Source: Phaeosaccion multiseriatum
Taxonomy: Eukaryota; Protista; Ochrophyta, other classes
Direction of reading: 5' to 3'
Length of the DNA: 64,000 bases
Assembly: GCA_965112735.1 (NCBI GenBank)
Contig: OZ218950.1
Coordinates: forward strand, 6,448,001-6,512,000
Below are positions 2,880-53,146 of the stretch, one piece after another. Made by a program: the position numbers and the translations under genes. The first letter of the stretch is position 1; every line of letters begins with the position of its first letter. The notes beneath the pieces were generated by a model. It ran no database searches, was not told the DNA's origin, and was given only the letters and a program-made list of their open reading frames with translations.

Positions 2880-4615
2880 CTAACCAGTAGCAGTGAACGA
2901 GGCAGCGGCGGCAGCAGCGGCAGCAGCCGCGGCAAAAGCAGACGCAGAAGCAGCAATGGAAGGAGGAGGAGGAGGAGGAGGAGGAGGAGGAGGAGGAGGA
3001 GGAGAAGAAGGAGTCATGGGTCCTGCCCTCTTCTTGGCTGGCATGGCTCCCTTCTCAGCACCCGCGCCGCCAGTCCTACTTCCCTCAAGCTCCCCCCCCG
3101 CCTCGTTGTCCCCCTCATCGGGCCGTGCGCGCTTCTTCCCACCCTCTTCCGCTGTTGCAGCAGGTCTGGTACGCTTCTTGGGCAGGCAAGCACCGCTGGC
3201 GATATTGATACTGCTGCTGCTGCTGCTGCTGGTGGTGGTGGTGGTAGTGGTGGTCGTGGTGCCAGCTCCACCGCCGCCCCCACTGCTGCCTGCCTCAGCT
3301 CGCCTCAGCCCCCCTAGCTCTGGCAGCAACTGCAGCTGCTGCAGCGGCGGCTGCTGCGGCCACTGTGGCTGCTTCTGCGATCTGCTTTGGTGGCCGATCG
3401 CTCTCGCGGCCTTCCCCACAGCGGCGGCGGCGGCAGCTGCTGCTGCTGTTGCTGCTGCTGCCGTTGCCGTTGCCACTGCAGCTTCTGTATTTGTCGCAGC
3501 CGCTGCCATGGCCGGGTCTGCCGCCACCAACGGCTCTCGTGGCTCTGCTGCGCTGGTCGCCGCGCCGGGCGCATTGCTGTGCTTCATGCAGAGGCCGCCT
3601 CTGCGAGACTGGTTGGGGCAGTCGGCCGCACTGCAACGCTTCCTCTTTCCGCCGTGCTTGGTGCAAAGCCCCTAAAGGAGCAGCAGCAGTAGCAGTAGCA
3701 GCAGCAGCAGCAGCAACAACAACAACATCAACAAATGCAAACACAATTTCAAGTTACATTTTGACTGCAGTTGGAAGGTAGAGTAGATTCTGCGGGAGAC
3801 ACCCAGCTTTTCATCGGGTCCGCCGAGTAGGGAGTGTTATGGATGTCCAATGGCCAGCGCAACAACCCATACATCCCCGCCTCCCCTCTCCCTCATTCAG
3901 ACATACATACTCACCTGCGAAATCACGTGAAACTCGCAGCCGTCGACCTTGCACCGGTTGCATATGGCCCCGTGCCGCACACACACGCCCCCCCGCACCG
4001 CCCTCCGGGCGCAGCCCACGGTCTCGCACTCCTTTAGCACGGCCCCGTGCTCCTGGCACCGCCCGGCCTGTTTGGCTTGCTTCTCGCAGCCTTCCGCGCT
4101 GCAGCGCTGGACCTTTCCTCCGTGCGCGACACATCGGCCGTTCTGTCGTTGTTTGTGAGTGGGCCGTTGGAAAAGTGGAAAGGTCAGGGTTGGGTTCTAT
4201 TATCCCACCTCCGCCCACTACCCACTACCCACACACGCACACAGAGACACACAACCCCCCAACATTCTTCCCCCGACAAGACGAAAGCGGTCGCCAAGCT
4301 CTTGTCCATTGTCCCCGAAAAACCCACCTGGACCGCCTGCTTCGGGCAGCCCTCCACGACACACCGCTTCATCCTGGCTCCGTGCCGAACGCAGAAGTTC
4401 TGCTTGTGCACCTGCTGCTTTTCACACCCCTCGTGGCTGCACTTCTTGGTGCGCGTGGGTGCGCCGTGCTTGACGCACAGTCCAGCGCTCTGCTCCTGCT
4501 TCAGGCACCCCTCCACCTTGCACCGCTTCTTCCTGCTCACGCCCCCGTGAGGGAGGCAGAGCCCTCCCCCCGACGCCCACTTCTCGCACCCCTCCTTTGC
4601 GCATTTCTTCCCCAT
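2880..4615 (-). CDS. Tandem CxxxGCxK...CxxHG (WRKY19-like) zinc-finger protein, ~435 aa (exons 4615-4328, 4142-3915, 3671-2880)
   Basis: About 8 repeats such as CAKEGCEKWASGGGLCLPHGG and CSAEGCEKQAKQAGRCQEHG. Phase-0 GT/AG introns restore the repeat register. Low-complexity tail with NLS-like KKRTR/KKRAR. Confidence 0.85.
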
Positions 4616-6568: not shown

Positions 6569-6816
6569 CTACGTCTTCAGGACCTCGAAAAGTAAATCCA
6601 AAGCGAGTAAGTCACTCTCGTCTTGCCGAGACACGGTACCAGCATTCTGTCGTTCCTGCAGCTGGTTACGCTGGTTGGCGAGTATGGTGCGCGTCTCCTC
6701 GTCATCGGAAGCCGCCCCGATCAGGCCAAGCACCCGATCGCGGAAGCGCTTCCGCTGCTGCGCCTTGAGTGAAAATGAAAGACGGGCACGGGGGAAAGTT
6801 TCACGGCTGATGCGCA

Positions 6817-6865
<49 letters not shown>

Positions 6866-6917
6866 GCGCCTCGATCCCCTTGCCTTCCTTGCCTTCTCGT
6901 CTGCGTAGTGGAGATGG

Positions 6918-6973
<56 letters not shown>

Positions 6974-7209
6974 GACCTCGAAAAGTAAATCCAAAGCGAG
7001 TAAGTCACTCTCGTCTTGCCGAGACACGGTACCAGCATTCTGTCGTTCCTGCAGCTGGTTACGCTGGTTGGCGAGTATGGTGCGCGTCTCCTCGTCATCG
7101 GAAGCCGCCCCGATCAGGCCAAGCACCCGATCGCGGAAGCGCTTCCGCTGCTGCGCCTTGAGTGAAAATGAAAGACGGGCACGGGGGAAAGTTTCACGGC
7201 TGATGCGCA

Positions 7210-7249
<40 letters not shown>

Positions 7250-7301
7250 GCGCCTCGATCCCCTTGCCTTCCTTGCCTTCTCGTCTGCGTAGTGGAGATG
7301 G

Positions 7302-7363
<62 letters not shown>

Positions 7364-10300
7364 GCGCCTCGATCCCCTTGCCTTCCTTGCCTTCTCGTCT
7401 GCGTAGTGGAGATGGGGCGTGCAGCAGTTGAAGTAAGAAAAAAAGAGCTATGTATATGTGTGTGTGTGTGTGTGTCGACGTGAGAAGAAAGGGCAGCAGC
7501 TGGGCGGTGACTGACGTACTTTGCTGTTGTACATAAATGGAGACAATGCCCTTGCAGTCACATGAACGCCGCCTGTGTGCATCCTCTGCCGCCTCCCTGC
7601 TCCTCGCCTGGAGGAGGTCCTGCTTTGCCGGGCACCCCTCCGGGTTTGTCCCGCATTTGAAGCCGTTGCTGGCCCTTTCCTTCTCGTCTGCGTAGTGGAG
7701 CCGAAGGAGATGGGGCGTGCAGCAGTTGAAGTAAGAAAAAAAAGAGCTATGTGTGTGTGTGTGTGTGTGTGTCGAAGTGAGAAGAAAGAGCAGGGGTGGG
7801 GTGGTTACGTACGTTGCTGCTGTTGATAGATGGAGACAATGCCCTTGCAGTCACATGAACGCCGCCTGTGTGCATCCTCTGCCGCCTCCCTGCTCCTCGC
7901 CTGGAGGAGGTCCTGCTTTGCCGGGCACCCCTCCGGGTTTGTCCCGCATTTGAAGCCGTTGCTGGCCCTTGCCTTCTTGTCTGCGTAGTGGAGCCGAAGG
8001 AGATGGGGCGTGCAGCAGTTGAAGTAAGAAAAAAAGAGCTATGTATGTGTGTGTGTGTGTGTCGAAGTGAGAAGAAAGGGCAGCAGCTGGGCGGTGACTG
8101 ACGTACTTTGCTGTTGTACATAAATGGAGACAATGCCCTTGCAGTCACATGAACGCCGCCTGTGTGCATCCTCTGCCGCCTCCCTGCTCCTCGCCTGGAG
8201 GAGGTCCTGCTTTGCCGGGCACCCCTCCGGGTTTGTCCCGCATTTGAAGCCGTTGCTGGCCCTTGCCTTCTCGTCTGCGTAGTGGAGCCGAAGGAGATGG
8301 GGCGTGCAGCAGTTGAAGTAAGAAAAAAAGAGCTATGTATGTGTGTGTGTGTGTGTGTGTGTCGAAGTGAGAAGAAAGGGCAGCAGCTGGGCGGTGACTG
8401 ACGTACTTCGCTGTTGTACATAAATGGAGACGAGGTCCTCGCAGTCACATGAACGCCGCCTGTGTGCATCCTCTGCCGCCTCCCTGCTCCTCGCCTGGAG
8501 GAGGTCCTGCTTTGCCGGGCACCCCTCCGGGTTTGTCCCGCATTTGAAGCCGTTGCTGGCCTCTGCCTTCTCGTCTGCGTAGTGGAGCCGAAGGAGGTGG
8601 GGGGCGTGCAGCAGTTGAAGTAAGAAAAAAAGAGCTATGTATGTGTGTGTGTGTGTGTGTCGAAGTGAGAAGAAAGAGCAGCAGCTGGGCGGTGACTGAC
8701 GTACTTTTCTGTTGCACATAAATGGAGACAATGCCCTTGCAGTCACATGAACGCCGCCTGTGTGCATCCTCTGCCGCCTCCCTGCTCCTCGCCTGGAGGA
8801 GGTCCTGCTTTGCCGGGCACCCCTCCGGGTTTGTCCCGCATTTGAAGCCGTTGCTGGCCTCTGCCTTCTCGTCTGCGTAGTGGAGCCGAAGGAGGTGGGG
8901 GGCGTGCAGCAGTTGAAGTAAGAAAAAAAGAGCTATGTATGTGTGTGTGTGTGTGTGTCGAAGTGAGAAGAAAGAGCAGGGGTGGGGTGGTTACGTACGT
9001 TGCTGCTGTTGATAGATGGAGACAATGCCCTTGCAGGCACATGGAAACCGCGAGTGTCCTTCCTCTGCCGCCTCCCTGCTCCTCGCCTGGAGGAGGTCCT
9101 GCTTTGCCGGGCACCCCTCCGGGTTTGTCCCGCACTTGAAGCCCTGGCTGGCCACTGCCTTCTCGTCTGCGTGGTGGAGCCGAAGGAGATGGGGCGTGCA
9201 GCAGTTGAAGTAAGAAAAAAGAGCTATGTATGTGTGTGTGTGTGTGTGTCGAAGTGAGAAGAAAGAGCAGGGGTGGGGTGGTTACGTACGTTGCTGCTGT
9301 TGATAGATGGAGACAATGCCCTTGCAGGCACATGAACACCGCGAGTGTCCTTGCTCTGCCGCCTCCCTGCTCCTCGCCGTGAGGAGGTCCTGCTTGGCCG
9401 GGCACCCCTCCGGATCGTCCTTGCACTTGTAGCCCTGGCTGCCGTCTGCCTTCTCGTCTGCGTAGTGGAGCCGAAGGAGATGGGGCGTGCAGCAGTTGAA
9501 GTAAGAAAAAAAAGAGCTATGTGTGTGTGTGTGTGTGTGTGTCGAAGTGAGAAGAAAGAGCAGGGGTGGGGTGGTTACGTACGTTGCTGCTGTTGATAGA
9601 TGGAGACAATGCCCTTGCAGTCACATGAACGCCGCCTGTGTGCATCCTCTGCCGCCTCCCTGCTCCTCGCCTGGAGGAGGTCCTGCTTTGCCGGGCACCC
9701 CTCCGGATCGTCCTTGCACTTGTAGCCCTGGCTGGCCCTTGCCTTCTCGTCTGCGTAGTGGAGCCGAAGGAGATGGGGCGTGCAGCAGTTGAAGTAAGAA
9801 AAAAAGAGCTATGTATATGTGTGTGTGTGTGTGTGTCGAAGTGAGAAGAAAGGGCAGCAGCTGGGCGGTGACTGACGTACTTTGCTGTTGTACATAAATG
9901 GAGACAATGCCCTTGCAGTCACATGAACGCCGCCTGTGTGCATCCTCTGCCGCCTCCCTGCTCCTCGCCTGGAGGAGGTCCTGCTTTGCCGGGCACCCCT
10001 CCGGGTTTGTCCCGCATTTGAAGCCGTTGCTGGCCCTTTCCTTCTCGTCTGCGTAGTGGAGCCGAAGGAGATGGGGCGTGCAGCAGTTGAAGTAAGAAAA
10101 AAAAGAGCTATGTGTGTGTGTGTGTGTGTGTGTGTCGAAGTGAGAAGAAAGAGCAGGGGTGGGGTGGTTACGTACGTTGCTGCTGTTGATAGATGGAGAC
10201 AATGCCCTTGCAGTCACATGAACGCCGCCTGTGTGCATCCTCTGCCGCCTCCCTGCTCCTCGCCTGGAGGAGGTCCTGCTTGGCCGGGCACCCCTCCGGA

Positions 10301-13133
10301 TCGTCCTTGCACTTGTAGCCCTGGCTGGCCCTTGCCTTCTCGTCTGCGTAGTGGAGCCGAAGGAGGTGGGGGGCGTGCAGCAGTTGAAGTAAGAAAAAAA
10401 AGAGGTATGTGTGTGTGTGTGTGTGTCGAAGTGAGAAGAAAGAGCAGGGGTGGGGTGGTTACGTACGTTGCTGCTGTTGATAGATGGAGACAATGCCCTT
10501 GCAGTCACATGAACGCCGCCTGTGTGCATCCTCTGCCGCCTCCCTGCTCCTCGCCTGGAGGAGGTCCTGCTTGGCCGGGCACCCCTCCGGATCGTCCTTG
10601 CACTTGTAGCCCTGGCTGGCCCTTGCCTTCTCGTCTGCGTAGTGGAGCCGAAGGAGATGGGGCGTGCAGCAGTTGAAGTAAGAAAAAAAAGAGCTATGTG
10701 TGTGTGTGTGTGTCGAAGTGAGAAGAAAGAGCAGCAGCTGGGCGGTGACTGACGTACTTTGCTGCTGTTGATAGATGGAGACAATGCCCTTGCAGGCACA
10801 TGAACACCGCGAGTGTCCTTCCTCTGCCGCCTCCCTGCTCCTCGCCTGGAGGAGGTCCTGCTTGGCCGGGCACCCCTCCGGATCGTCCTTGCATTTGAAG
10901 CCGTAGCTGGCCACTGCGTCCAGGCGTATGTTCAGGGGCCGAGGGGGGGTGGGGCGTGCAGCAGGTAGTTGAAGTAAGAAAGAAAGAGTTACAAAGAAAT
11001 GAGGGACTAGAAGTGGGAAGAAAGAGCAGCAGCCGGGCGGTGACATCCCTCTTTCTTGAAGAGCAATGGACACGATGGTCTGAAAGTCACACAACACACC
11101 TACAAAACACCCACCCACACACACACACACCCCCACACACACACACCCACCCACCCACACACCCACCCACACCCACCCACCCACCCACCCACACACCTAC
11201 CCACACAGCCACACACACGGCTACACAGCTACACACACCCACCCACCCACCCACCCACCCACCCACCCACCCACACACACACCTACCTACACAGCTACAT
11301 ACACACCCACACACACTTCACACACCAAAGGTGGACGCATGTTTTACTCACCAGCTTCGCAGGGGGGCTCGTAATGACACTTCTCCTCTGCGGTTGACCA
11401 CACACTCACTGAGGAAGCATTGGGAACGAGGGCCAGCAGCTTGTCCCGCAGGGCAAGCTTATCGCCTTCGTCGTGGCAGACCGCCTTGACGTCCCCGTTG
11501 ACCTGGTGTTGCGGTTCCCCGGTAAGCTCCAGTGGGGCAGTCAAGTTGGTGAGGTTGGGGAAGACGCGAGCAATGGCCTCGGGGCGGGCAAAGCCGAGGG
11601 ACCCAACTCTGCCTGGTCCCTTGCTGACGGCAAGGCTTGTCACGCGGAGGAGGGCTTGCCCCCAGGTAACAAGTCTCCACCAGGCAAGCGGGTCCAAGCC
11701 GGAGAAGGTGAGCGAGTGAACGCGTCCGTTCGAGTGCACCACTCCGAGCACTTTCTCCATGAGATGGGGTGTCAGCTGACAGTCGGAGAAACGCCTCGAA
11801 AAGATGGACGAGATGCTGTGGCACCTGGTCGGCGGAGAGGGCGCACAGAAGGTCGACGGCCTTGTCCACGTGTCCTGCCTCGCATAGGCTGTTGATGCAG
11901 GCGGAGACGGTGAGGCCGCGCATCGACGCAGGGATGGGGTCGAAGCGGCGCAGAAGCATGTCGGGTTGGAACTGGGGAGCCTGCTCCGCGCCCGCGGTGA
12001 CCGCCAGTGCTTGGACGACATGCCCGACGGCCTCTCGATCAGCCTCGTTGAGAAGCTGCGCCAGCCGCATCACCGCCACAGCCTCCAGAGCAGCCAAGAG
12101 CCAGCGCCACCAACCCGAGGGGTTGATGGTTAGGAGGAGGAGCAGGCCATCCGCTGCCACGCGGATGGCCTCGCGAACGAACGCCGTGCGGCCCAGCGCC
12201 ACAACCACCTGAAGGTGGAGAAGGGCCAGCAAGTGCCGCAGCATCCTGCCGCCAAGGGCTACCAGGTCTTCTGGCAGGTGGTTGGTGTTGCGTCGGGCCA
12301 CCCTGTACTCAACCCCTCCCTCTCTGTCATTTCTCTCCTCCACGCGGCAGACGGGCACGGGAATGAGGTTCACCACCACATTCTTGTCAACCTCATTCAC
12401 GCGGCGCCACTCATGGAAGGGAGCGCCGCCCTCGTCCCACGACAGGTGCGATACGTAGTCCGACACGTAGCAGGTGACACGCCCCCAGTCGCCGAGGTGG
12501 CCAACAAAGAGTAGGGGCCCATCCGTGGCCCCATCCGTCGGTCCACACGGCGTGGGGATGCCAGGGGAAGCCATCAGGGTGGGGCCCACGACAAGCTCAA
12601 CGTACTTGTCCGCCTTGGCATCGCCGCTCGCCGCGGGGTTGTTGTGACCCCATTCCTTGAGCTGCTCCGCCCCCTGCACCGTCGTGTGGGCCCAGGGCTT
12701 GCTCCCGGGTTGGTGCACAGTGGATGCCCCTAGGCGCAAGCGGTAGCACCGTGTGCCGTTGGACAACAGCTCGCCATCGCCAATGGAGAGCACCTTGGAG
12801 ACGAGACGGGCGTTCGATGGCTTCCACCCGCCACACTTGCCGGCTGGAGGGGTGCCTCCAACATCGCTGCTGCTGGGGAGGGGCAGAAGGAGAGAAGAGA
12901 CAGGGAGAGAGAGAAAATCACAAAATTGTACGTGGCTTTGGCAGTTGGGGCATATCGATCGAAGAGACAACAGAGGGCAAGGGGAAGATGAGAAGTAGAC
13001 CCCATTTCTTGCCTCACCTGGCAGATGCAGCCCCCGAGCGGCTGCTGCCGCCTTCTCCCGCCCGGAGAGGCGATCGCTGCATGTCGCTATCCTCATCATC
13101 GCTGATGACGATAGTCTCCCTGTCGTCTGCCAT
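6569..13133 (-). CDS. Novel 16-exon, ~1535-aa protein: SIM, degenerate UDG-like domain, PPR/LRR-like segment, 12 x 56-aa Cys/His repeats (one exon each), poly-Asn and a duplicated C-terminal domain
   Basis: Exons 13133-13018, 12872-11825, 11775-11352, 11099-10758, then 168-nt exons 10634-10467, 10343-10176, 10048-9881, 9750-9583, 9457-9290, 9166-8999, 8872-8705, 8574-8407, 8274-8107, 7980-7813, 7687-7520, and a final exon 7398-6569. All introns are GT..AG and all phases are compatible. Total 4608 nt; no internal stop seen. Confidence 0.75.
6582..7412 (-). repeat. Nested duplications punctuated by (AAC)n/(GTT)n tracts within the final exon
   Basis: Two copies of MRISRETFP...LDLLFEV and three copies of the EKARKARGSRR segment, separated by poly-Asn runs. 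Confidence 0.9.
7399..11050 (-). repeat. Tandem array of ~290-300-bp exon+intron cassettes (12 units)
   Basis: Near-identical units. Each is a 168-nt exon followed by a 121-132-nt intron (GTACGT...(CA)n...CGCAG). Confidence 0.95.
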
Positions 13134-16596: not shown

Positions 16597-17361
16597 TCAT
16601 GTCAGATCCATGACATCCCCCCCCCCCCTCTCGCCTGCCCCCATACTGCTGGCACTGCATCCGTCCCCCTCCTTGAGTACCACCTCGTCGCCGTCCCTCC
16701 TTCTCTTCTTCCCGGCACCTCTGCCAGCGTTAGACTGGGAACAAGTCCTGCCGAGCACGAAAGGCGCCGGAGCCCCCCCCCCCCCGTTGCTGCTGCCGCT
16801 GCTGCCGCTGCTGCCACTGCCAGTGTTGCGCCGCGGAGGAGGCCCGGGCGCGGAGGACGGAGCCGCCCCCCCCCCGCTGCTGGTGGTGCTGCTGCAGCTC
16901 GTCGTCCCCCCGCTGCTGCTGCTGCTGCCCCCCCGACCCTGCGTTCCGAGCACTTCCTCCGCTTTGAGGAGTTTCTCGAGCAGCTTCTCCCGCTTCTGCT
17001 CAAGATCCGTCGAAGAAGGAACTGATGTGCTGGGGGCGCCGGTACTGGCACTGGTGCACGACAACGAGGAGGAGGAGGACGCGCTGCTGGAGACATTGTT
17101 CACAGCCCTCTCACCGTACTTAAAGTGGAAACTGCAGAAGCCTTCCACGTAGCGTTGGAAGTCTGTACACGAGTCCACTTTACATTTCTTGTGGCTCAGG
17201 CATGTGTTCTCCCCCCGTGCCCTCCGCTCGGTGCATAGCGCCCCACCGTCCAGGACGGTGGTGCATCGTTTGTCCAACGAAAGTTGCCCGGCGTGTACCT
17301 CACAGAGAGTCAACCACGTGATAGCCTTTCCACACCCCGAATGAGCACATTCCTTCTTCAT
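16597..17361 (-). CDS. Intronless CxxxGC...C..H zinc-finger protein (~254 aa)
   Basis: Three Cys3-His units (CAHSGC..LCEVH; C..LC..CLSH; CKVDSC..FCSFH), a short coiled coil, NLS KKRRR and a C-terminal VMDLT SIM-like motif. Confidence 0.7.
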   Translation of the reverse strand: MKKECAHSGCGKAITWLTLCEVHAGQLSLDKRCTTVLDGGALCTERRARGENTCLSHKKCKVDSCTDFQRYVEGFCSFHFKYGERAVNNVSSSASSSSSLSCTSASTGAPSTSVPSSTDLEQKREKLLEKLLKAEEVLGTQGRGGSSSSSGGTTSCSSTTSSGGGAAPSSAPGPPPRRNTGSGSSGSSGSSNGGGGAPAPFVLGRTCSQSNAGRGAGKKRRRDGDEVVLKEGDGCSASSMGAGERGGGDVMDLT

Positions 17362-17398
17362 TGTCACCTTGTTTTTTGTTGTTGTTTGTTTTATTCGA

Positions 17399-32315: not shown

Positions 32316-35300
32316 ATGGGTAAGGGAAGGAGAAGGTCCTCCGTGGGCCAGCCGAGCCCCGCCAACAGTAGCGCAGGAAGCGCGGGTGGGAAAGGAGGAG
32401 ACAGAGCCAGCAAGGGCAAGGTCGCGGCCAGCCTAGTCAACAAAGCCGAGCAACGCGCGTTCTTCGACCCGGCTTACTGCGTACCCGCGGGTCAGGCCGG
32501 CGCGGATGACCTCTTCAAAGACGAGGAATATGTTGGAAAGTGAGTACCTATCGATCGTAAAGGAATGCTGACTCAATGGTGTGATTTGACATCGTATATT
32601 CTCCCACATTTGCCCCTATACTGCTGCTCTGTCTTGTTTGAACGTGGCCCTCCAATGGAACACAAGTCACTGTGCACATTTTCTCACCATTCGTAGCCGC
32701 CAGGCTGTGCATACATATGTCCCCCTAAGCAACCTGCTTGTACCCGTTGTTCCTTCTCTGTCCCTCCCCTACCTCCCCTTCAGACTGCTCTACACGCCCT
32801 GCATCATCCTCCGGCAGGTGGCGGACAGCAGTGACGTCATGGTGCGCACCACAGATGGCGAGCGCCACCGCATGAAGGGAGAGCACCTGCGCTACGTCGG
32901 GAAGCAGGCCGAGGAGGGCGTGAGGGACATCCTCGTCCTTAATGACTTCAGCGAGATGAGCATGTTGCACACACTGAGGGTCAGATACCTCAAGGACGAG
33001 GTGCGTGTGTGTGCGTGTGTGTGCGTGTTTGTGTATGTGTGCGCGAGGCAAGAGGAGCGAGTGGCCGAGGCGGTGACGTGGGGATACTGGGAGGACGTCA
33101 CGGCTGGAGACGAACGGACTCGATGGCTAAGCAACGCGACAGATGTACTAACTTCCAACACCCCCCCCCCACTATCTTTTCGCTTCCCCCCCCCTTCTCG
33201 TCAACGAACCTCAACGCGCTTCGTATTTTGCATCATATCACACACCACAAACCATACCACGCACATACACACACATAAACACAATATGTATGTTATGTAT
33301 ACATGTATACATCACACTACACACAGGTGTACACCTTCGTGGGCCCCATCCTCATCTCCATCAACCCCTACAAATGGATCAAGGGCCTCTACGAGGAAAG
33401 CGCCATGCTTACCTACCACGGGGCTTCGGCGCAGGGAGGGGACGCCGCCGCCTCCCTCGCTCCCCACCTCTTCTCCGTTGCCGACGCTGCCTACTGCGCC
33501 CTCGTCAACTCAAGCAAGAAGGCACAGAACCAGTCCATCATCATCAGTGGAGAGAGCGGCGCCGGAAAGACGGAAGCCACCAAGATTATCATGCAGTACC
33601 TGGCCAGGATCACCAGCGGCTCGTCGGGCGGGGGGGGCAGCGGAGGTCATGCCCCGGGGGGAGAGATTATCGCTGCTCACTCCGGCGGTGGGGGGGGGGG
33701 GAGCACCATCCACGTTGGCGAGCTGGAGGAGCGAGTGCTTAGCTGCAATCCGGTGCGTGGGTGCGTGCGTGCACGTGTGCGTGGGCTTGGATGTGTGGAA
33801 GCATAAGACTGCGTGGGCGTGGGCGAGTGTGTGCTGCCGTTGGGCATCAGGACCCCCAAGTCACACCGAAACACTCTCGAAAGACAAGCGGACAGGCCCA
33901 CCCTTTCTACGATTCGCCCCCCCGCCCCCTCTTCCTCCCATCCCTCTTACTAACACGCCCAACACAACGCTCATACTCAAATCAATAACCCGCCGTATGT
34001 GCGCCTGTCCTCCTTCCTTGCCACACCACTTCCATCAGCTCTTGGAGAGCTTTGGCAACGCTCGCACCCTCCGAAACGACAACTCGTCGCGCTTCGGAAA
34101 GTTCATCAAGATTCAGTTCGACGCCTCTGGCAAGATCACGGGAGCGCAGATCGAAAACTACCTGCTGGAGAAGACGAGGATCGTAAGGCAGGCGGTGGGG
34201 GAGCGCAACTACCACATTTTCTATCAGGTAGGTAGGCGGGGAAGGCGGGAGAGGAGTGGGAGGAAAGAAGGCGCTGGCACAGTAAGTATGGAAGTACGTA
34301 GGCGTGCGAGTGGATAGAACGATTGGTCTTGCTTTCTTCACCTTCTCCTTTATCATCAGGAGACCTGATCGTTGTGCTTCCTTCCTTCCCCTTCCCCTTC
34401 CCTTTTCCTCTCATCCTCAGCTCCTGGAGGGCCTCAGTAGCGACGTGCTGAAGGGCCTGGAGCTGGAGGGAGGGCCTCAGGCCTTCGGATTCCTCAACGG
34501 CAGCGAGTGCTACGAAGTGCCTGGCAGGAGCGACACAGAGGTGGGTGGGTGCGTGCGTGCGTGCATGACGGATGGTCCATGGCCCGTTGTGGGCCAGGCA
34601 CTCAGTGGCAATTCTTCACCGGATTGTATACTGGAGTCTATCGTGGTCCCGCCTCTCTTTTTCACTCCCTGCTCTCTGTCTCACTCCCTCGTCCTCTCGT
34701 CTTCACCTTGTCCCCACGCCCCTCCGCCCTCTACTCTCTCGTCTTCACCTTGTCCCCACGCCCCTCCGCCCTCTACTCTCTCTCTTCCTCCCTCTCCCTC
34801 GTCCACAACAACCTCTGCTTGACAACTGCATGACCTCTGCTTGACAACCTCTGTTGGACGACAGGAGTTCGAGGTGACTGTAGCTTGCCTGGCCGCCATC
34901 AACGTGTCTGAGGAGACGCGTGCACGCATCTTTGAGCTGTTGGCCGCTGTGCTGCACCTCGGCAATGTCCAGTTTCAGGACAATGAGGAGGGCCACGCGG
35001 CCATGGCCCCGGAGAGCGACGCCCACCTGCGGGCAGCGGCTCGCATGCTCGGGTTTGAGGGAGATGCCATGGGAAGGGCGCTCTGCACGAAGGTAAGTTG
35101 GGTTGTTAGATGGTTGGGTGTGGGTGGGTGGTTGGTTGGTTGGTTGGTTGGTTTTGTGCTTGATGGTTTGTGGTTGGATCGCTGGCTGGCTGGCTGGCTG
35201 GTTGGTTGGTTGGTTGGTTGGGTCAGCTGGTTGGATGGCGGTGAGGCGAATCAAGCTTGCAGTCTTGGGGGATACCGATTCTCAGTACCCATACTGGTAA

Positions 35301-38300
35301 TAAGCTTGCTGGGACTGAAACTGAAACTCTGCGTCACAACAACAGGTGCTGAAGATGAAGGGATCTGATGTGGTGCAGCACCAGTCAGTGGAGCAGGCCA
35401 TCGACAAAAGGGATGCCTTGGCCAAGGTGAGCAGAGTGAGCAGCGAGGGGGTTTAGAGAGAGGGAGCAGCATGGCAGCTACTTGCAGTCGACAACGACAG
35501 GCCTGAACGGGGCACGCGTGGGGGGAGGTATGCGAAGGGCAAACAACCTCAAGCACATGCCATTGTACTGATCAGTCTCACGTAGTTTTGCTTGCTGGCG
35601 ACGTTTGCGATCACCACCACCAACTCGTCCATCACCTACCCACCCATCCACCTACCTCCCCTCAGGCGGTGTATAGCGAGCTCTTCCTGTGGCTGGTGCA
35701 GGCTCTGAACCGGACCATCAGCGCCGAGCAGGGCAAGTGGTGGGGCTTTATCGGGGTGCTCGACATTTACGGTTTCGAAAAGTTCGACGTCAACAGCTTC
35801 GAGCAGGTACGAGACAATTTTGAAAGAAGCATAGAATGAAGAGTGGCAGAGCCAGTTGTCTCTATGAGTATCTTTACTTCTTCCTTCCTAATTTTCCTCT
35901 ACGCCCTTCACACACATGTGTGTGTGTGTGTCAATGAATGCTCAAATAGCTGCTGATCAACTACGCCAACGAGAAGCTGCAGCGCCACTTCAACAAACAC
36001 ATCTTCGAAGTGGAGCAGGAAGAGTATGCCAACGAGGGCATTGACTGGAGCTACATCAAGTTCAACGACAATCAGGTACATGCAGTGCACCATCACGTAA
36101 CTATTCGCATCGCTACGTCTTGTCGTATATCTATATACCTGCACGTACTACCATCTCACAACCCACCACACACCCCCATTCACGGCCACCCCCAACCCCC
36201 CCCTACACCCACCCACTCATCCACTGCCATCCCACCCTGTCCCAGCTGTGCCTGGACTTGATCGACGGCAAGCCGCACGGCCTGGCAGGCATCCTCAACG
36301 CATTGGACGATGCGCAGCGCTTCAAGGGAGAGGAGGCCAACGCAAACTACCTCAATCAACTTCACGTGTCCTTTGGAGGGGACAAGGTGAGTGCATGAGT
36401 GAGCATCACCTGGGCATCATCTGGGCATCACCCTTCTCTCTCACCCCCCCCCCCCCCACCCTACTTCACTGCTCCACTTCTCCACTGCCAGACAGCAGCA
36501 CACAGCAAACTTTCCATCGTTTTGGCGCTTGGACCGTCCTTTATGTTGCTCTTTTGCCTGTGCCCGTGTCCAACTGTTTGCCTTTTTGCCCACCTTCTCT
36601 CTCTTCTTCTCCCCTCCCTCCCTCCGTCCTTCTGTTAAAGGCCAAGCACGAACACTTCGTGGTGCCGCGTTTCCACAAGGACACGTACTTTGGCATCCTG
36701 CACTACGCAGGGGAGGTGTTCTACACTGTGCAGGGCTTCAACGAGAAGAACAGGGAGAACCTCAGCAGCGACATCAAAGACCTCATCAGAGGCACCTCCT
36801 CCGACTTGCTCACGTGAGTCAGAGTCAGGCATTGCTCTTGTCTCGTCTCTCTCTCTCTTCCTTCTCCCTCCGTACCTCTTTCTCTCTGCCTCTCTCTCTC
36901 TTCCATCTCTTTTGTCTCTCTCTCCCTCTCTACCTCTCTCTCTCCATCTCTCCCTCTCTTTTTCCGTTCTTCCTTCACCTGAGTGCTCTGTGGTCGGTAC
37001 TTGCTACCCCCACTTCAGCCCTCCCCCCGCTTACCTCTCACTCACACCCTCCTCGAACCCTAACCCTATCCCTCTTGCCTCTCCCCCCCCCCCCCACCAC
37101 CACCACCACCACCACCACTATCCCACCCCTATTACAGCGAGGCCTTTGCCATCGGGAGCAGTCTCCTGGACAGCTCCAACCTTGCCGCCCCCGGGGGTGC
37201 GCCTGGGCCAGCGGGCAACGCGCGCCGCGGGGGAGGTAGAATCCGCGAGACATCTGTGAGCGCACAGTTCAAGCAGAGCCTACAGGTAAAGGTGTCTTGT
37301 CTTGTCCCTCTTTCTCGTGGTCGAACATCTCTTCTTTCGCGCTTGCTGGAGCGCCACCCATCTCCCCTTTCTCACCCCTCTCTTCTCGTTGGTTCTGCTC
37401 CCTCCATCACCCTTTGTGTGAACTCGCTCACCCACACCGCAGGGTCTCATGCACACAGTAGCCGCCACGTGTCCTCGTTACATCCGCTGCATCAAGCCCA
37501 ACCATACCAAGGAGGCAGATGCCCTTAATGGGGTTGAGACGCTGCGCCAGCTCAAGTACGCAGGGATGATGGAGACTATTCGCATCAGGCAGCAGGGCTA
37601 CGCGTTGCGTGAAGACCACGACCAGTTCGTGGCTCGCTACATGGCCCTTGCGCCGGATGCAAAGACGGTGGAGGAGCTTGTGGACCGCCTCTCGAAGCAG
37701 CTGAGCATCGGTCACGAGGACTGGCAGATCGGCACCACAAAGGTGGGAGAGAGATGGTTTGGCCTACACATACACGCACGCACACACACACACACACACA
37801 CATGTATATACTCATACGCTCATACGCACATATGGATGCTTTTGGTTTGGCTCCTCTCGTCCCCTCCTTGTCCTATATCCCTCTCCTCGTCGCGCCACTG
37901 CGATCCGCCTGCCTATCCTCCGCTCACTCTTTGCCTCCTCCCCCTCTCCCTTCCCTCCTTCATTACCTACCTACCTGCCTACCAAATGGCTCTGCACATG
38001 CGTACGAACACAAGATCTTCCTCCGCCGGACCCTCGCCGACAGCCTCGAGCGATTGGTGGCGCTGAGGATCTGCTCTGCCACTCGCACTGTCCAGCGGGC
38101 GTGGCGAACCCATGTGGCCCACACCGCGAGTGTGAAGCTGCAGACGTGGGTGAGGTGTAGGATGCAGGTGCGCAGCCTGGCTCGAACGGTCCGCGCCACG
38201 GTTCGACTCCAGTGCTGTCTTCGCAAGTGGAGCGCACAGAGTCGGTACGCGGCAGAGCTGAAGAAGGTGAGGAGGGAGGGGAGGGAGGGAGTTGACTGGG

Positions 38301-41300
38301 CAATCTTGTCTTCTCTTACGTGTGAGTATGTCTTGAAAACTTGGCTTCGAAACAAAAGACATGCATGTCCTACATACACACACAACCATCGCTCGCTGCA
38401 TTCTATGCGTTCCCGACATCCCAATCGTGCATCCACATCTTCCTTGTTTCGCTGACTCCATCTTGCTTGTCACACTCGTTCTTCTTATCCTTATCCCTGT
38501 TTCCCTTCTTCTCGACAAACGCGCCCTCAGGTTGTGGGCTGTCAGACTGCCGCGCGCGGCTACTTGGCTCGGCGCCTGCTGCGAGACTTGAAAGACCCTT
38601 ACAGGCAGATGGCAGTGGATGAACTCGCCACTGCCCTGCTGAAGGCGGAAGAGGAGCTGAATCAGGCGCTGGAGGACAAGGTCTTCTCTCGGTGTGAGGA
38701 GCTGCAAACGCGCATCACCCACATCCAGCGCGTGCTCAAGGACAAGGGCGGAGTCCCGATTGATGCGGAGGGAGGAGGAAGCGCCTCAGGCGGCGATAGT
38801 CCCTCCTCCCACAACGGGATGAATCGCGAAGAGATTGAAATTCGCATTCTCGAGACGCAGCTGCGACTGGACGCTGCCAGTGCTGACAAGGACTTTGGCC
38901 TTTGTGGACAGCTGCAGGAAGCCATGTCGGCACTCGAGGCCATCAAGGCGCAGCACAAGGCTCAGCATCCCACCATGGAGGAGGTGGAGGAGGGCATTGC
39001 CAAGGCCAAGGTGGACATTGAGCACGCCATGACAGGCAAAGACTTCAGCAGGTGTGCTCGGCTGCAGGCAGATATTGAGGTGTTTGAGACGCAGCGAGCG
39101 AAACTCGTTGCCGCGAAAGAGGCAGCAGCAGCGGCGGCTGGAGGAGGGGCTGTAGGAGGCTCGGGCGACGATCTGTCCAAGCTGATGCGAGGAGAGCTTG
39201 CGGGCAGGCTGGAGGAGGCGAAGGCTGCGCTGGCGGAGGCCGAGAAGGAACGGCGCTTCAACGAGTGTGTATCCCTCCAGGCGAGGATTGATGCTGTGCA
39301 GCAGGCCATCGATGCCCTGCCTGCAGTGGATACCTTGGAAGAGGCCGTTCGCGAGACAAAGGAGAGACTCGAAGCTGCGACAAGTGCCAAAGACTATCGA
39401 GTGCAAGCGGAGCTGACGATCGAGTTGGAACGAGTGTCGACACAGCTTGCAGCAATGGTGGAGGACGAGCAGAAGGAGTTTTCGAGAGAGAAGGTGACGC
39501 TCCGCCTGGGTGAGCTTGAGGGGCTGGTGAAGAAGGCAATCGCAGATAAGGACTTTGTGCAGTGTGGGCCTTTGCAGAAGGAGATTGATAAGCTGGAGAA
39601 GATTAAAGCCACCTTCCCCTCGGCGGAGAAGCTCGACGCGGATATTGAGGCAAAGGAGGAAGCCGTTAAGGCCAGCCTCGCCGCGAGAGACTTTTCTGCT
39701 TGTGCAACGCTGGAGGAGGAGCTCAAGGGACTAAAGGGAGAGCGCGCACTTTGCCCTGAGCCTCTGCCCGTGAAGAAGACGATGAAACAGCCGGAAGACG
39801 GCGCTAAGAAGGCCCCCGTTGCCGCGAGAGTTGTAGCGGGGGGAGTTGGAGCAACAGTACCTACCGCACCGCTGACTGCCGCTGCTACTTCACCATTGGC
39901 GGCTCGGTCCAAGAAGAATGGCGTCGCAGTAGTGTCTGCCAAACCTTTGACGGCGAAGAAACAGCCCAAGTCAGGAGCACCAAAAGCAGCGTCAGCAGCA
40001 GCAGAGACACGGCCGGTGTCGAAGCTGCGGCCCAAGCAGCCCGTGACTCTCTCTCAAGAGGCCACCGTGGAGGAAGTCGCGCTGGAGATGAGCAAGCACC
40101 GCACTGACGCGGCACTTCTCGTGTCGTCTTCCGGCGCTCTGGCAGGCATCATTACGGACAACGATCTGACCAGGAGGGTCGTGGCCAAGGGAGTCGATCC
40201 CACGACCACCGCAGTGGCCGATGTCATGACCGCCAATCCCCTCTGTGTGGCGATGGAAGACTCGGCGCTGGAGGCCCTAGGGATCATGATGCAGCGTCAT
40301 TTCCGGCACTTGCCAGTGACTTCCGGCTCAGAGAAGGGCGGTGGTGTATCGGGACTGCTGGACATTGCCAAGGTCATGTACGATGCGATTTCCTGCTTGG
40401 AGAAGAAGGCGCAGAGAGAGAAGGAGAACGGAGGAATGGGAAGTGGGAAGGGAGGAGGGGGGGCGTTGGGAGAGAGCAGCGTGGCCAACTTGGAGAATAT
40501 GACGCGGGCATTGGGCAAGAGCAGTGGAGGAGCCGGGGCGGGCAAGAAGGCGGCGCAGCAGGCCGCAGTGATGCAGATGCTCCTCCAGCAGGTGTTTGCG
40601 GACAATGAGGAGCCGACCTTGGGTGATGTGCTCCAGTCCAAGGGCACACCACAGTTCGTTTCTCCCTCAGACAGCGTGCGAGCCGTGGCGGAGGTGATGG
40701 CGGAGTGCCGAAAGGCGGTGCTGGTGCTTGACGGACGCTCTCTCGTGGGTATCTTCACGCCCAAGGACCTGCTGAACCGCGTGCTGGCGAAGGGTCTATC
40801 TCCAGACGAGACGGCGGTGGAGGAGGTGATGACTCCCAACCCGGACAGCGTATCTCCAGAGCTGAGCGTGCTGGACGCGCTTCATCAGATGCACGAGTAC
40901 AAGTACTTGCACTTGCCTGTGGTGGAGGAGAGCGGGAAGGTGATTGGTCTGGTGGACGTGATGGAGGTGATTGGCGCGGCGGGAGGAGAGGACGGCTCCG
41001 GATGGGAGTCCTTTTTTGGCAGCGCTATGGATGCCCGAGATGACATGTCCGACACTGCTAGCCTTCACAGCGTAGGGAGCTTGCGAGGCCCGAGGAGCGA
41101 GGCCAGCTCCAAGGCTCCGAGCGGAGTGTCGACCAAGGCTGCCGCGGCGGCTGCTGCTGATGCGCGGCCGGTGTCTCGCCTCCGGCCCAAGATGCCCATC
41201 ATTATGGACGACTCGAGTAGCATCGAGGAGGTGGCGGTGGAGATGTCGAGAAAGAGGACAGACGCGGCTCTGTTGGTGAGCGAGGAGGGCGCTCTCCAGG

Positions 41301-44300
41301 GCATCGTAACGGACAATGACCTGACGAGGAGAGTGGTGGCGAAGAGCGTTGACCCCTCTTCCGGTGTGTCTGAGGTGATGACGCCCAACCCGCGGTGTGT
41401 GCAGATGGAGGACTCTGCTCTGGAGGCTTTGGGGGTGATGCTGGAGCGTCACTTCAGGCACTTGCCGGTGACGGATGAGGCGGGGTCTGTATCGGGGTTG
41501 CTCGACATTGCCAAGGTTATGTACGATGCCATTTCGCGACTGGAGAAGGTGGCGGAGAAGAAGAACGAGGAAGGAGGAGGTGACCCGAACGCGGCCGCCA
41601 TGGCAATGATGGCAACAATGCAGGCTGGGAGCAAGAAGGGCATGAGTGCGAAGCAGGCGGCGGCAATGCAGATGATGCTGCAGATGCTGGGGGGTGATGA
41701 CAACAAGCTGGCGTCCTTGGGGGAGGTACTGTCCTCCAAGGCGAAGCCTCTGTTCGTTTCTCCCTCAGACAGCGTGCGAGCCGTGGCGGAGGTGATGGCG
41801 GAGTGCCGAAAGGCGGTGCTGGTACTTGACGGACGCTCTCTCGTGGGTATCTTCACGCCCAAGGACCTGCTGAACCGCGTGCTGGCGAAGGGTCTATCTC
41901 CAGACGAGACGGCGGTGGAGGCGGTGATGACTCCCAACCCGGACAGCGTATCTCCAGAGCTGAGCGTGCTGGACGCGCTTCATCAGATGCACGAGTACAA
42001 GTACTTGCACTTGCCGGTGGTGGAGGAGAGCGGGAAGGTGATTGGTCTGGTGGACGTGATGGAGGTGATTGCTGCTGTTGTCGGGGAGGAGGGCTCTGAC
42101 GGATGGGAAGCCTTCTTTGGAGGTGCGATGGACATGGGAGACGAGTTTTCAGACACCGCGAGCCACCACAGTTTGGGCAGTATGAGGAGCAAGAGGAGCA
42201 CCAAGAGCAAGAAGACGACAATATCAGAGGCGCCATCGAAGGCTGCCGCGGCGGCTGCTGCTGATGCGCGGCCGGTGTCTCGCCTCCGGCCCAAGATGCC
42301 CATCATTATGGACGACTCGAGTAGCATCGAGGAGGTGGCGGTGGAGATGTCGAGGAAGAGGACAGACGCGGCTCTGTTGGTGAGCGAGGAGGGAGCGCTC
42401 CAGGGCATCGTAACGGACAATGACCTGACGAGGAGAGTGGTGGCGAAGAGTGTTGACCCCTCTTCCGGTGTGTCTGAGGTGATGACGCCCAACCCGCGGT
42501 GTGTGCAGATGGAGGACTCTGCTCTGGAGGCGTTGGGGGTGATGCTGGAGCGTCACTTCAGGCACTTGCCGGTGACGGATGAGGCGGGGTCTGTATCGGG
42601 GCTGCTCGACATTGCCAAGGTTATGTACGATGCCATTTCGCGACTGGAGAAGGTGGCGGAGAAGAAGAACGAGGAAGGAGGAGGTGACCCGAACGCGGCC
42701 GCCATGGCAATGATGGCAACGATGCAGACTGGGAGCAAGAAGGGCGTGAGTGCGAAGCAGGCGGCGGCAATGCAGATGATGCTGCAGATGCTGGGGGGTG
42801 ATGACAACAAGCTGGCATCCTTGGGGGAGGTACTGTCCTCCAAGGCGAAGCCTCTGTTCGTTTCTCCCTCAGACAGCGTGCGAGCCGTGGCGGAGGTGAT
42901 GGCGGAGTGCCGAAAGGCGGTGCTGGTACTTGACGGACGCTCTCTCGTGGGTATCTTCACGCCCAAGGACCTGCTGAACCGCGTGCTGGCAAAGGGTCTA
43001 TCTCCAGACGAGACGGCGGTGGAGGCGGTGATGACTCCCAACCCGGACAGCGTATCTCCAGAGCTGAGCGTGCTGGACGCGCTTCATCAGATGCACGAGT
43101 ACAAGTACTTGCACTTGCCGGTGGTGGAGGAGAGCGGGAAGGTGATTGGTCTGGTGGACGTGATGGAGGTGATTGCTGCTGTTGTCGGGGAGGAGGGCTC
43201 TGACGGATGGGAAGCCTTCTTTGGAGGTGCGATGGACATGGGAGACGAGTTTTCAGACACCGCGAGCCACCACAGTTTGGGCAGTATGAGGAGCAAGAGG
43301 AGCACCAAGAGCAAGAAGACGACAATATCAGAGGCGCCATCGAAGGCTGCCGCGGCGGCTGCTGCTGATGCGCGGCCGGTGTCTCGCCTCCGGCCCAAGA
43401 TGCCCATCATTATGGACGACTCGAGTAGCATCGAGGAGGTGGCGGTGGAGATGTCGAGGAAGAGGACAGACGCAGCTCTGTTGGTGAGCGAGGAGGGAGC
43501 GCTCCAGGGCATCGTAACGGACAATGACCTGACGAGGAGAGTGGTGGCGAAGAGTGTTGACCCCTCTTCCGGTGTGTCTGAGGTGATGACGCCCAACCCG
43601 CGGTGTGTGCAGATGGAGGACTCTGCTCTGGAGGCTTTGGGGGTGATGCTGGAGCGCCACTTCAGGCACTTGCCGGTGACGGATGAGGCGGGGTCTGTAT
43701 CGGGGCTGCTCGACATTGCCAAGGTTATGTACGATGCCATTTCGCGACTGGAGAAGGTGGCAAAGAAGAAGAACGAGGGAGGGGATGGAGCCAGCGATAT
43801 GATGTCATCGGCGATGGCAATGATGGCGAAGCAAAGCGGCATGAATAGTGCGCAAGCTTCTGCAATGAAGATGATGATGCAACAGTTGTACGGCGGCGCC
43901 GATAGTGAGCAGCAGCAAACGCTGGAGGATGTCTTGGCCTCCAAGGCGAAGCCTCTGTTCGTTTCTCCCTCAGACAGCGTGCGAGCGGTGGCGGAGGTGA
44001 TGGCGGAGTGCCGAAAGGCGGTGCTGGTACTTGACGGCCGCTCTCTCGTGGGTATCTTCACGCCCAAGGACCTGCTGAACCGCGTGCTGGCGAAGGGTCT
44101 ATCTCCAGACGAGACGGCGGTGGAAGATGTGATGACTCCCAACCCGGACAGCGTATCTCCAGAGCTGAGCGTGCTGGACGCGCTTCATCAGATGCACGAG
44201 TACAAGTACTTGCACTTGCCTGTGGTGGAGGAGAGCGGGAAGGTGATTGGTCTGGTGGACGTGATGGAGATTATCACCGCTACCGTGGGGCGTGAGGGCT

Positions 44301-45193
44301 CTGACGCATGGGAAGCCTTCTTTGGGAATGCTATGGATGCCGGAGGCGACGACTTTTCGGACACCGCATCGGAGCGGTCTGCGAGGTCGGCACGCTCGTC
44401 CCACTCGACCACCAGACATATCAAGAGCGGTGCCAGAGCGGTCAAGGGAGGGGTGGGCGCGGTTGCTGCTCCGGGAGCAATGTCTCCCCCCCGAGGTCTC
44501 GTGAGGCAGCACCACACGCCTGCGAGGGGCGGCGAAGGGCTCCAGGCGAGGGCTGTCATGCCAGTGGATGGAGATGGCGGTGCCCCTGGGGGGGACGGCA
44601 TGCTCCAGCACGACTACGAGGCGATGAGTGATATGATGGGCATGAGTGTGAGGGACAATCTCGAGGGAGAGGACGAGCAGTTCGTGTACAAGGTGCTCGA
44701 TCAAGAGGGACACACCCACCGCATTCGCTCTTCGGCAGAGCGGTTGGAGCCTCTGGTGGAGGCGGTGACTTCTAAGCTCACAAAGCTGGCGGCTGGCATG
44801 GGCAGTAGCAGCGACCTTACCGTCACTCTCAAGTACAAGGATGATGAGGGTGACGACTGCCTCCTTGCAGGGGATGACAGCCTGCACGAGGCCATAGACA
44901 TGGCGAGGGCAGCAGGATGGCCGGCCCTCAAGGTCAGCGCTGTTGTTGCCAGCGCACCGGCGAATGCAATGGCGCCTCCTCCTCCTCCAGCAGCTTCTCC
45001 TGCCGCGCAAGAAGGAGGAGGAGGAAAGAAATCAGGTGCAGACACGCAGACACCTGTAGCCTCGGCTGGGGTTTCTGCAGCCGGGGCTTCTCCCAAGGCC
45101 TCTGGGGGTTCGGGCAAGGCCCTGTTGGGAGTTGGGGTAGTAGTAGCCTTGGCTGCAGCGGCAGGCTTTGCGATTCTTGGGCGGAAGAAGTGA
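32316..45193 (+). CDS. Myosin (stramenopile CBS/PB1-tailed, Myo29-like), ~3142 aa, 15 exons
   Basis: Exons 32316-32539, 32784-33000, 33327-33752, 34039-34227, 34421-34540, 34865-35092, 35346-35426, 35666-35806, 35950-36075, 36246-36386, 36641-36813, 37138-37285, 37443-37742, 38015-38266, 38531-45193. Motifs: P-loop [43 protein letters not shown] motifs, 16 CBS, PB1 (LKYKDDEGD) and a C-terminal TM. Confidence 0.95.
41135..43762 (+). repeat. Near-identical 1104-bp in-frame tandem duplications of the four-CBS module
   Basis: Unit starts at 41135, 42239 and 43343, with only scattered substitutions between copies. Confidence 0.95.
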
Positions 45194-51600: not shown

Positions 51601-52210
51601 CCAAAAGTGTCGAGATGGACACTGAAACGCAGGAGGAGCGGGAGAAGGAGGGGACAGAAGCAGGGGTAGGGGCAGAGGAGGCAGAGACAGACGCGAATGA
51701 CTTGTCGGTGCTGCTGCAGAGCAGGCTCCTGACGGTTCTTCGGCTGTTCCAGACCATCGTACCCTCTGCCGTCACCGCAGCCCACTTCGAGATGTTGAAG
51801 GTGCTGCCTCCGTCCACTGCCCAGCTGCTGGCCTTGCCTCCCGTACTCCAACTGGATCTCATTACTCTGCTCATGGAGGCCGAGCGATGGAGGGGGGAGG
51901 GTAACCAACAGCACTGGACCGCCAGCAGTGGGGGCGGAGGAGGAGGAGGAGGAGGAGGAGGCGGAGGAGGCGGAGGAGGGGACAAGGGGGGAGCGGGCTG
52001 CTCGGCGCTGGAACTGGTCCTGCAGGTGAGGCCGCGGTATGGTGCAGTGCGTTCGGGCGATGCAAGTAGAACCAACCCATGGCTCTACCCACCTGCCTAC
52101 CATACCCCTGTGCCTGTCTTTAGTCTGTCTGTTTAGTCTGCCTGTTTGTCCGTCCATCTGTCTGCATGTCTGTATGTCTGCCTGTCCGTATGTCTGTCTG
52201 CCTGTCTGCC

Positions 52211-52260
<50 letters not shown>

Positions 52261-52316
52261 CATGTCTGTCAGTCTGTCAGTCTGTCTGTCTGCATGTCTA
52301 TCTGTCTGTCTGTCTA

Positions 52317-52371
<55 letters not shown>

Positions 52372-52481
52372 GATGTCTTGCCTGTCTGTCTGTCTGTCCG
52401 TCAGTCTGTCTGTCTGTCTGTCTGTCTGCCTGCCTGTCTGCTGTCCATCTCACTGTCTGATGTCTTGTCTGTATGTATGTG

Positions 52482-52526
<45 letters not shown>

Positions 52527-53089
52527 GCCGACCTGTCTATCTGTCCATCTACCAATCCGTCTATATGTCTGTCTGCCTGCCTTTCTGTCTGCCTCGTATG
52601 CCTGCCTGCTGGAGTGAAGGACACATGCGTTACCTACCGGAGCTTGCTGCGTGTATGCAATCCTTCTCCCCTGCCCATGCATACCCCAGACCTAGTCTTA
52701 CTACCTCTCTTCTCTCCATTCCCCTCCCCACGCTTCCAAGCCTCAGCCCGCTCAACACCGCCTCCCCCCCCCCCCCTCCTCCGGTTCTCCTCTTCCTGTG
52801 CCTCAATACAACGCACACACACGCACACATACACAATTCAGTTGATGGTGCATGCCCCAAGCCCGCGCGTACGCACCGCTTGTCGAGCGCTCGCGGTGAC
52901 TGCCCTGACCAAGATCTGCGTGACGTACGTGGGTCGGCAGGGAGGGGGAGGAGGAGGGGCATCGGAGCAGGAGGCACTTATCTGGGTGGACTGTGTAACG
53001 GCAGACACCGTTCCCTGCATCGTCACGCTGGCGGAAGCAGCGACACACGACCCTTTCGCTTACTGGCAGCAAGCCTTGTCTGCTCCTCC

Positions 53090-53146
<57 letters not shown>

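Follow-up and report, generated by a model that had tools for sequence, protein, structure and literature searches.

A satellite-like tandem array in Phaeosaccion multiseriatum that probably forms the repeat exons of a lineage-restricted spliced gene

Can a tandem array that looks like satellite DNA be a series of protein-coding exons at the same time? This question is raised by a locus on contig OZ218950.1 of the ochrophyte Phaeosaccion multiseriatum (assembly GCA_965112735.1), where we analysed a stretch of 64,000 nucleotides (positions 6,448,001 to 6,512,000, forward strand), referred to below as the window and numbered from its first letter. Tandem Repeats Finder (TRF) describes a single array at 7408-10912, with a period of 291, 11.9 copies, 92% matches and 2% indels. 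We consider it probable that this apparent 291-bp satellite consists of twelve exon-plus-intron units of one spliced, lineage-restricted coding gene, which would run from about 13099 to 6569 on the minus strand and contain 14 exons.

A continuous frame through the array

Mapping every [CT]GCAG acceptor and every GTACGT donor divides the region 7399-10913 on the minus strand into 12 units. Each repeat exon is preceded by CGCAG and has GTACGT at its end. The exon is exactly 168 nt long in 11 units and 156 nt in the first unit, where the acceptor is shifted 12 nt inward compared to the other units, i.e., by a multiple of three, so that the phase is kept. The spacers that follow the cassettes are 123, 123, 127, 130, 125, 123, 126, 130, 132, 126 and 125 nt long, and the last one is 121 nt. 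All repeat exons are symmetric (phase 1-1), and the splice donors and acceptors are intact in all twelve units. A 30-nt core is found 12 times in the window, exclusively within the array, where the expected number is 0, and no reverse-strand copies of the exon were seen. An earlier reading of the letters, made with no database searches (the sequence-only reading), had described eleven 168-nt exons of phase 1-1 that lack stops, separated by introns of 121 to 132 nt with a GTACGT donor and a CGCAG acceptor. All of these elements were located on the minus strand, and the proposed frame (exon offset 2) is free of stops in every unit.

The coding status is supported mainly by the continuity of the frame across the array and its flanks. 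The phase match, the 12-nt acceptor shift and the open terminal exon agree independently. At the 5' junction, exon 1 ends in phase 1 (exon end at 11352), and the first cassette accepts in phase 1. At the 3' junction, the cassette frame runs on for 830 nt beyond the last acceptor (7399/7398), while frame 0 hits stops there. When the 14 segments are joined at the proposed GT-AG sites, using the allele with a deletion at 11806, they form one frame of 4581 nt, i.e., 1526 codons with a single terminal stop.

This deletion concerns exon 1. Upstream of the array there are two ORFs (open reading frames) on the minus strand, one of 546 codons at 11459-13099 and an overlapping one at 11344-12021 in a different frame. 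A deletion of 1 nt at 11806 fuses both into a single frame. Codon usage within exon 1 favours the frame of the first ORF upstream of 11806 and that of the second ORF downstream, and the switch of frame coincides with the deletion site. The sequenced sample is heterozygous across 11765-11807, where the deletion is linked to 11765 T>C and 11789 A>G, and only the deletion allele holds exon 1 in frame with the array. In contigs from public sequencing runs of the same sample, the depth of the deletion allele is 53.6/128.9 in run X1, 184/184 in X3 and 925/925 in X4, and contigs with the GG of the window are present in X1 and X2.

The terminal exon repeats the start of the cassette exon for 14 nt and is divergent thereafter. 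It contains an in-frame tandem duplication of 393 bp (6581-7358, 2.0 copies according to TRF, 97% identical), and each copy holds (AAC)n runs encoding poly-Asn, a copy of the cassette acceptor and the cassette exon's initial 14 nt. The CGCAG acceptors at 7398, 7284 and 6900 all share one phase and might act as alternative 3' splice sites.

The splice signals of this genome were characterised in a myosin gene at 32638-38500 on the plus strand, which has at least nine introns. Nine of them (33.7-37.3 kb) were mapped by following the conserved motor sequence, with one boundary lying a few bases off its anchor. These introns are 143-456 nt long, G-rich in their 5' part and C/T-rich in their 3' part, with acceptors that are mostly CAG or TAG and donors that include GTGCGT, GTAGGT, GTGGGT, GTAAGT, GTGAGC, GTACGA, GTACAT and GTGAGT. 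This is also the grammar of intron 1 and of the cassette introns, which supports that the introns of the array are real. The 5' half of intron 1 is occupied by a long microsatellite at 11088-11325, which reads (GGGT)n/(GT)n or, on the plus strand, CACC/CACA and fits the habit of this genome to place G-rich sequence after the donor. A search of Rfam gave no match.

To score codon usage, a model was trained on 6239 codons from four long ORFs in the window, and two of these ORFs have Pfam matches. The proposed frame, which is the one chosen in the sequence-only reading, ranks first among all six frames with -5.67 bits per codon; the other minus frames reach -5.85 and -5.95, and no frame on the plus strand does better than -6.07. 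The cassette introns score below the proposed exon frame in the same model.

The 56-residue module and its variation

Translation of a repeat exon at offset 2 gives a 55-residue peptide and one codon that is split by the junction and reads His or Asn. In total, 33 positions of the module are invariant, including C11, C18, H37, C42 and C44, with the spacing C-x6-C-x18-H-x4-C-x-C. These five residues are fixed in 12 of 12 units, just as in the consensus proposed earlier, in which four Cys and the His did not vary, and at the nucleotide level all Cys and His codons are invariant across the units. The invariance of these five residues is weak evidence, because all copies are recent duplicates.

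The module has no recognisable relative. In Pfam, 0 families match at E up to 10, and a profile built from the twelve repeats gave 0 matches against 1.84 billion protein representatives. Among PDB sequences the best match to the module reaches only E = 0.46, no match to it was found in metagenome contigs, and it is unrecognised in the ESM Atlas (recognition 1188, below the useful range). The repeat had been described beforehand as being of an unrecognised type, and the hidden Markov model (HMM), PDB and profile searches, all without a match, agree with this.

AlphaFold2, run on the 12-row alignment, predicts three helices with a mean predicted local distance difference test score (pLDDT) of 59.6 and a predicted template modelling score (pTM) of 0.40. 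The model is too weak for the geometry of the ligands to be judged. According to this model and the alignment, the module is predicted to be largely helical and charged, with two hypervariable patches flanking an invariant core. The invariant pattern of Cys and His allows the conjecture that these residues bind zinc or another metal, and the Cys of the module may have a disulfide role. The module would be a new Cys/His domain family, while the architecture in which it occurs is already known, see below.

For exon 1, no homologues were found. It contains one sub-threshold PPR motif (about 11845-11895), and its AlphaFold model has a pLDDT of 40.2 and is unusable. A uracil-DNA-glycosylase-like domain at 12080-12530 on the minus strand was considered and rejected, as there is no Pfam match even at E = 1. 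Searches of the gene revealed neither a ROC-COR nor an NB-ARC signalling domain.

Variation between the units is concentrated outside the core of the exon. The 60-nt core, encoding PEGCPAKQDLLQARSREAAE, has 3 variable columns, while the other 108 nt have 38 (Fisher p = 4e-6). The patches are also more variable than the introns (38/108 versus 16/118 columns, p = 1.6e-4), with their columns linked in a few blocks. One block reads KDD or GTN, another reads DAHRRRSCD or EGHSRCSCA, and the 3' end of the exon co-varies with the type of the intron 5' part. The first two blocks occur in each of their four possible pairings, so segments have been exchanged between units. Since the variable columns co-vary in so few blocks, column-wise tests of this kind overstate the number of independent observations.

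We suggest that a 168-nt phase 1-1 exon, together with an intron of about 125 nt, was amplified in tandem within a spliced gene until there were 12 intact copies, probably by unequal crossing-over. Gene conversion or recombination between units would then have homogenised the copies and shuffled the few variant blocks into a mosaic. The array is bordered by a decayed copy on the 5' side and by truncated copies on the 3' side. Each exon would add one 56-residue module, and the number of modules would be freely tunable, as symmetric cassettes keep the frame. That any cassette could be gained, lost or skipped in frame was already proposed in the sequence-only reading, and it follows from the symmetric phase 1-1 exons of 168 nt. 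We infer that the exons are spliced and translated, and the variable patches would presumably form a binding surface.

Coding constraint and rival explanations

Several observations weigh against a functional coding gene and have to be set beside the continuity of the frame. Among the eleven full-length exons, the ratio of non-synonymous to synonymous polymorphism (pN/pS, Nei-Gojobori) is 0.91, and it is 0.88 and 0.89 in the other two frames, so that it carries no frame signal. The changes fall in 21 codons with amino-acid differences and 4 codons with synonymous differences only, a ratio that neutrality predicts for 130.5 non-synonymous and 34.5 synonymous sites. The 41 variable exon columns are spread 16/14/11 over codon positions 1/2/3, and the exons exceed the ungapped intron columns in nucleotide diversity (0.089 versus 0.056). 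No unit has a stop in exon frame 0 either, which gives an Arg-rich reading; with two open frames, openness alone cannot pick the frame. In addition, the shared openness and the shared length amount to about one observation, because all copies go back to a single unit. A frameshift in exon 1 brings the assembled allele to a stop at codon 547. The lack of any homologue of the module or of exon 1 in Pfam, PDB, metagenome contigs and 1.84 billion protein representatives and the low confidence of both structural models point in the same direction.

The sequence-only reading had taken the restriction of indels to introns as a signature of coding constraint, and this argument did not survive. The changes in intron length sit in (CA)n, T-run and C-run tracts, and the intron alignment shows only one length change outside such microsatellite tracts, a 4-nt difference between the two 5' intron types. 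Because the exon lacks such tracts, mutation bias would largely lead one to expect this pattern, which is therefore uninformative. Minor contigs of runs X1 and X3 carry 1-nt exon deletions at 7624, 10542 and 10833, which would speak against an intact frame. However, these are in 3-nt homopolymers and absent from the deepest run, and X1 and X3 also show deletions in A7, G7 and G6 tracts; they are probably errors. Four public runs contain the locus, and in these the introns and intergenic DNA are covered and there are no splice joints, i.e., they are DNA-like and add no support for expression. A second search for runs, using a solid neighbouring gene, gave only runs of the same sample, whose kind is unknown. 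Because the runs found are DNA-like, the lack of RNA support reflects the available data and not necessarily the expression of the gene.

It could be that the locus is gene-like but not, or no longer, functional. It would then be a young orphan or a decaying locus, in which the unit expanded as a selfish or neutral minisatellite and now drifts, and the invariance of the core and of the Cys and His would reflect recent descent and homogenisation. The pN/pS of about 0.9 and the 16/14/11 spread over codon positions are what this explanation expects, and so are the frameshift in one of the two alleles and the absence of a homologue for any part of the gene; furthermore, the block-wise covariation means that the Fisher tests overcount independent events. 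Nevertheless, the other allele is open for 1526 codons across 13 introns, and all 12 donors and acceptors are intact, whereas the decayed partial unit in intron 1 ('unit 0') shows what decay looks like here. A contrast of 3/60 variable columns in the core to 38/108 in the patches is also hard to obtain from homogenisation alone. We consider loss or lack of function rather unlikely.

Another explanation would be a non-coding minisatellite, with the upstream gene ending at the TAA at 11344-11346 and the array forming a 3' untranslated region or intergenic DNA, so that the splice-like ends and the open frames are accidents passed on to every copy. An in-frame stop does follow directly after the proposed donor of exon 1, and two of the three minus frames are open in every unit, openness being cheap at 59% GC. 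Once the microsatellite tracts are set aside no indel evidence of constraint remains, and the DNA-like public runs offer no RNA support. What argues against it is the number of coincidences that it needs. The phases match at the 5' junction, the shift of 12 nt in unit 1 is in phase, and the same frame stays open for about 90 unique codons past the last acceptor, where frame 0 meets stops. Codon usage is best in exactly that frame, and the polarity of the introns matches that of real introns. We estimate the joint chance of the frame coincidences alone very roughly as 0.01, and we regard an accidental minisatellite as improbable. A spliced gene that probably is specific to this lineage, belongs to the known one-repeat-per-exon class and carries an undescribed module accounts better for these junctions.

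A further-reaching version of the spliced-gene reading can be drawn by analogy with the candidate receptors encoded by the ROCO genes and the NB-ARC-TPR genes of brown algae. The module would then be a new metal-stabilised helical fold, selection would maintain the diversity of its patches while gene conversion, copy-number change and exon skipping reshuffle them, and the product would be a tunable protein for the recognition of nucleic acids or other ligands, made of a repeat unrelated to those of the algal genes. We consider this version improbable.

Comparison with known repeat genes, and features of the window

In brown algae, the LRR-containing ROCO genes and the TPR-containing NB-ARC-TPR genes carry one repeat per exon; the repeat exons undergo shuffling, introns contain inactivated copies, and the repeats are mixed by alternative splicing (Zambounis et al. 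2012, PMC3341825; Teng et al. 2024, PMC11378527). The sequence-only reading had named these genes as the known parallel, which is apt, as the architecture is common to both (PMC3341825, PMC11378527). Here too, each repeat matches a single exon, whose length is constant and a multiple of three. The phase is identical at its two ends and, in the deletion allele, the array is in frame with the flanking exons. The two systems also share tandem amplification with exchange between units, a conserved scaffold with variable patches, the possibility of in-frame skipping, and an inactivated exon copy in a neighbouring intron, which here is 'unit 0'.

However, the repeat itself is different. At 56 residues (168 nt), bearing invariant Cys and His and predicted to be helical, it is neither an LRR (72 nt) nor a TPR. 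Unlike the brown-algal genes, no ROC-COR or NB-ARC domain accompanies the array and no reverse-strand exon copies are seen, and homogenisation extends over the entire exon-plus-intron unit (92% identity), as would be expected of a young array. The brown-algal genes have been demonstrated to undergo diversifying selection and alternative splicing, while the locus described here is known from its DNA sequence.

A second parallel comes from animals, where module exons of phase 1-1 have been duplicated within genes. Examples are the kringle IV-2 exons of apolipoprotein(a), which vary in copy number, and the EGF and Ig modules, all in accordance with Patthy's rules for exon shuffling. As in those genes, the exons are symmetric with phase 1-1, the amplified unit would be exon plus intron multiplied by unequal recombination, and the copy number could change without danger to the frame. 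The animal modules are, in contrast, well-known disulfide-bonded extracellular folds of secreted proteins, while the provisional N-terminus here revealed no signal peptide.

Kinship with the Zf_WRKY19 fingers (PF24906) was considered as well. Both have a short K-C-x-EGC-P-K-Q-like motif and Cys/His units in tandem. The shared EGCP-KQ motif does not extend to a relationship, as hhalign aligns 6 residues with a probability of 0.8%, and since the spacing and the order of the ligands differ, the module is not a member of this family.

If spliced as predicted, the locus would be a clean natural case of a satellite-like array that doubles as coding sequence. Unequal recombination would then add or remove whole protein modules, with the frame never broken. 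Annotation based on ORFs or on homology would completely miss this protein of about 1500 residues. A wider question is whether the amplification of exon-plus-intron units is a general route of this lineage to new repeat proteins.

The coordinates of all parts of the proposed gene are listed in Table 1.

Table 1. Parts of the proposed gene, in order along the minus strand (window coordinates)
Feature	Position	Strand	Description
Exon 1	11352..13099	-	Starts provisionally at the long ORF's first ATG and extends to the donor G/GTGAGT; ends in phase 1
Heterozygous frameshift site	11806..11807	-	GG in the window; the other allele has one G fewer
Intron 1	10914..11351	-	438 nt; starts with GTGAGT, then a 5' part rich in (GGGT)n/(GT)n; 3' part C/T-rich, ending in GACGCAG
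Decayed partial unit ('unit 0') within intron 1	10914..11100	-	Placed by alignment; copy of exon 3' end and intron; GTACGT donor and (CA)n tract lost
Repeat exon 1	10758..10913	-	156 nt; acceptor 12 nt further in, phase kept
Repeat exon 2	10467..10634	-	168 nt, phase 1-1
Repeat exon 3	10176..10343	-	168 nt, identical to repeat exon 2
Repeat exon 4	9881..10048	-	168 nt
Repeat exon 5	9583..9750	-	168 nt
Repeat exon 6	9290..9457	-	168 nt
Repeat exon 7	8999..9166	-	168 nt
Repeat exon 8	8705..8872	-	168 nt
Repeat exon 9	8407..8574	-	168 nt
Repeat exon 10	8107..8274	-	168 nt
Repeat exon 11	7813..7980	-	168 nt
Repeat exon 12	7520..7687	-	168 nt, identical to repeat exon 4
Last cassette intron	7399..7519	-	121 nt, GTACGT...CGCAG
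Terminal exon	6569..7398	-	830 nt including the stop (6569-6571); open in the cassette frame

Other genes are found on both sides of the locus. Several long ORFs at 49364-61583 on the plus strand carry Npa1 and NopRA1 domains and point to a URB1-like gene of ribosome biogenesis. The ORF with the NopRA1 domain, 938 residues long, has no database relative at E <= 1e-10, which indicates that the lineage of this organism is poorly sampled. An ORF at 4184-4615 on the minus strand encodes three Zf_WRKY19 fingers (PF24906, E = 1.3e-17), and a second Cys-rich ORF of similar look, at 16597-17367 on the same strand, is without a Pfam match. Finally, an uninterrupted ORF of 2219 codons at 38534-45193 on the plus strand encodes 16 CBS domains (E = 3.9e-147) followed by a C-terminal PB1 domain.

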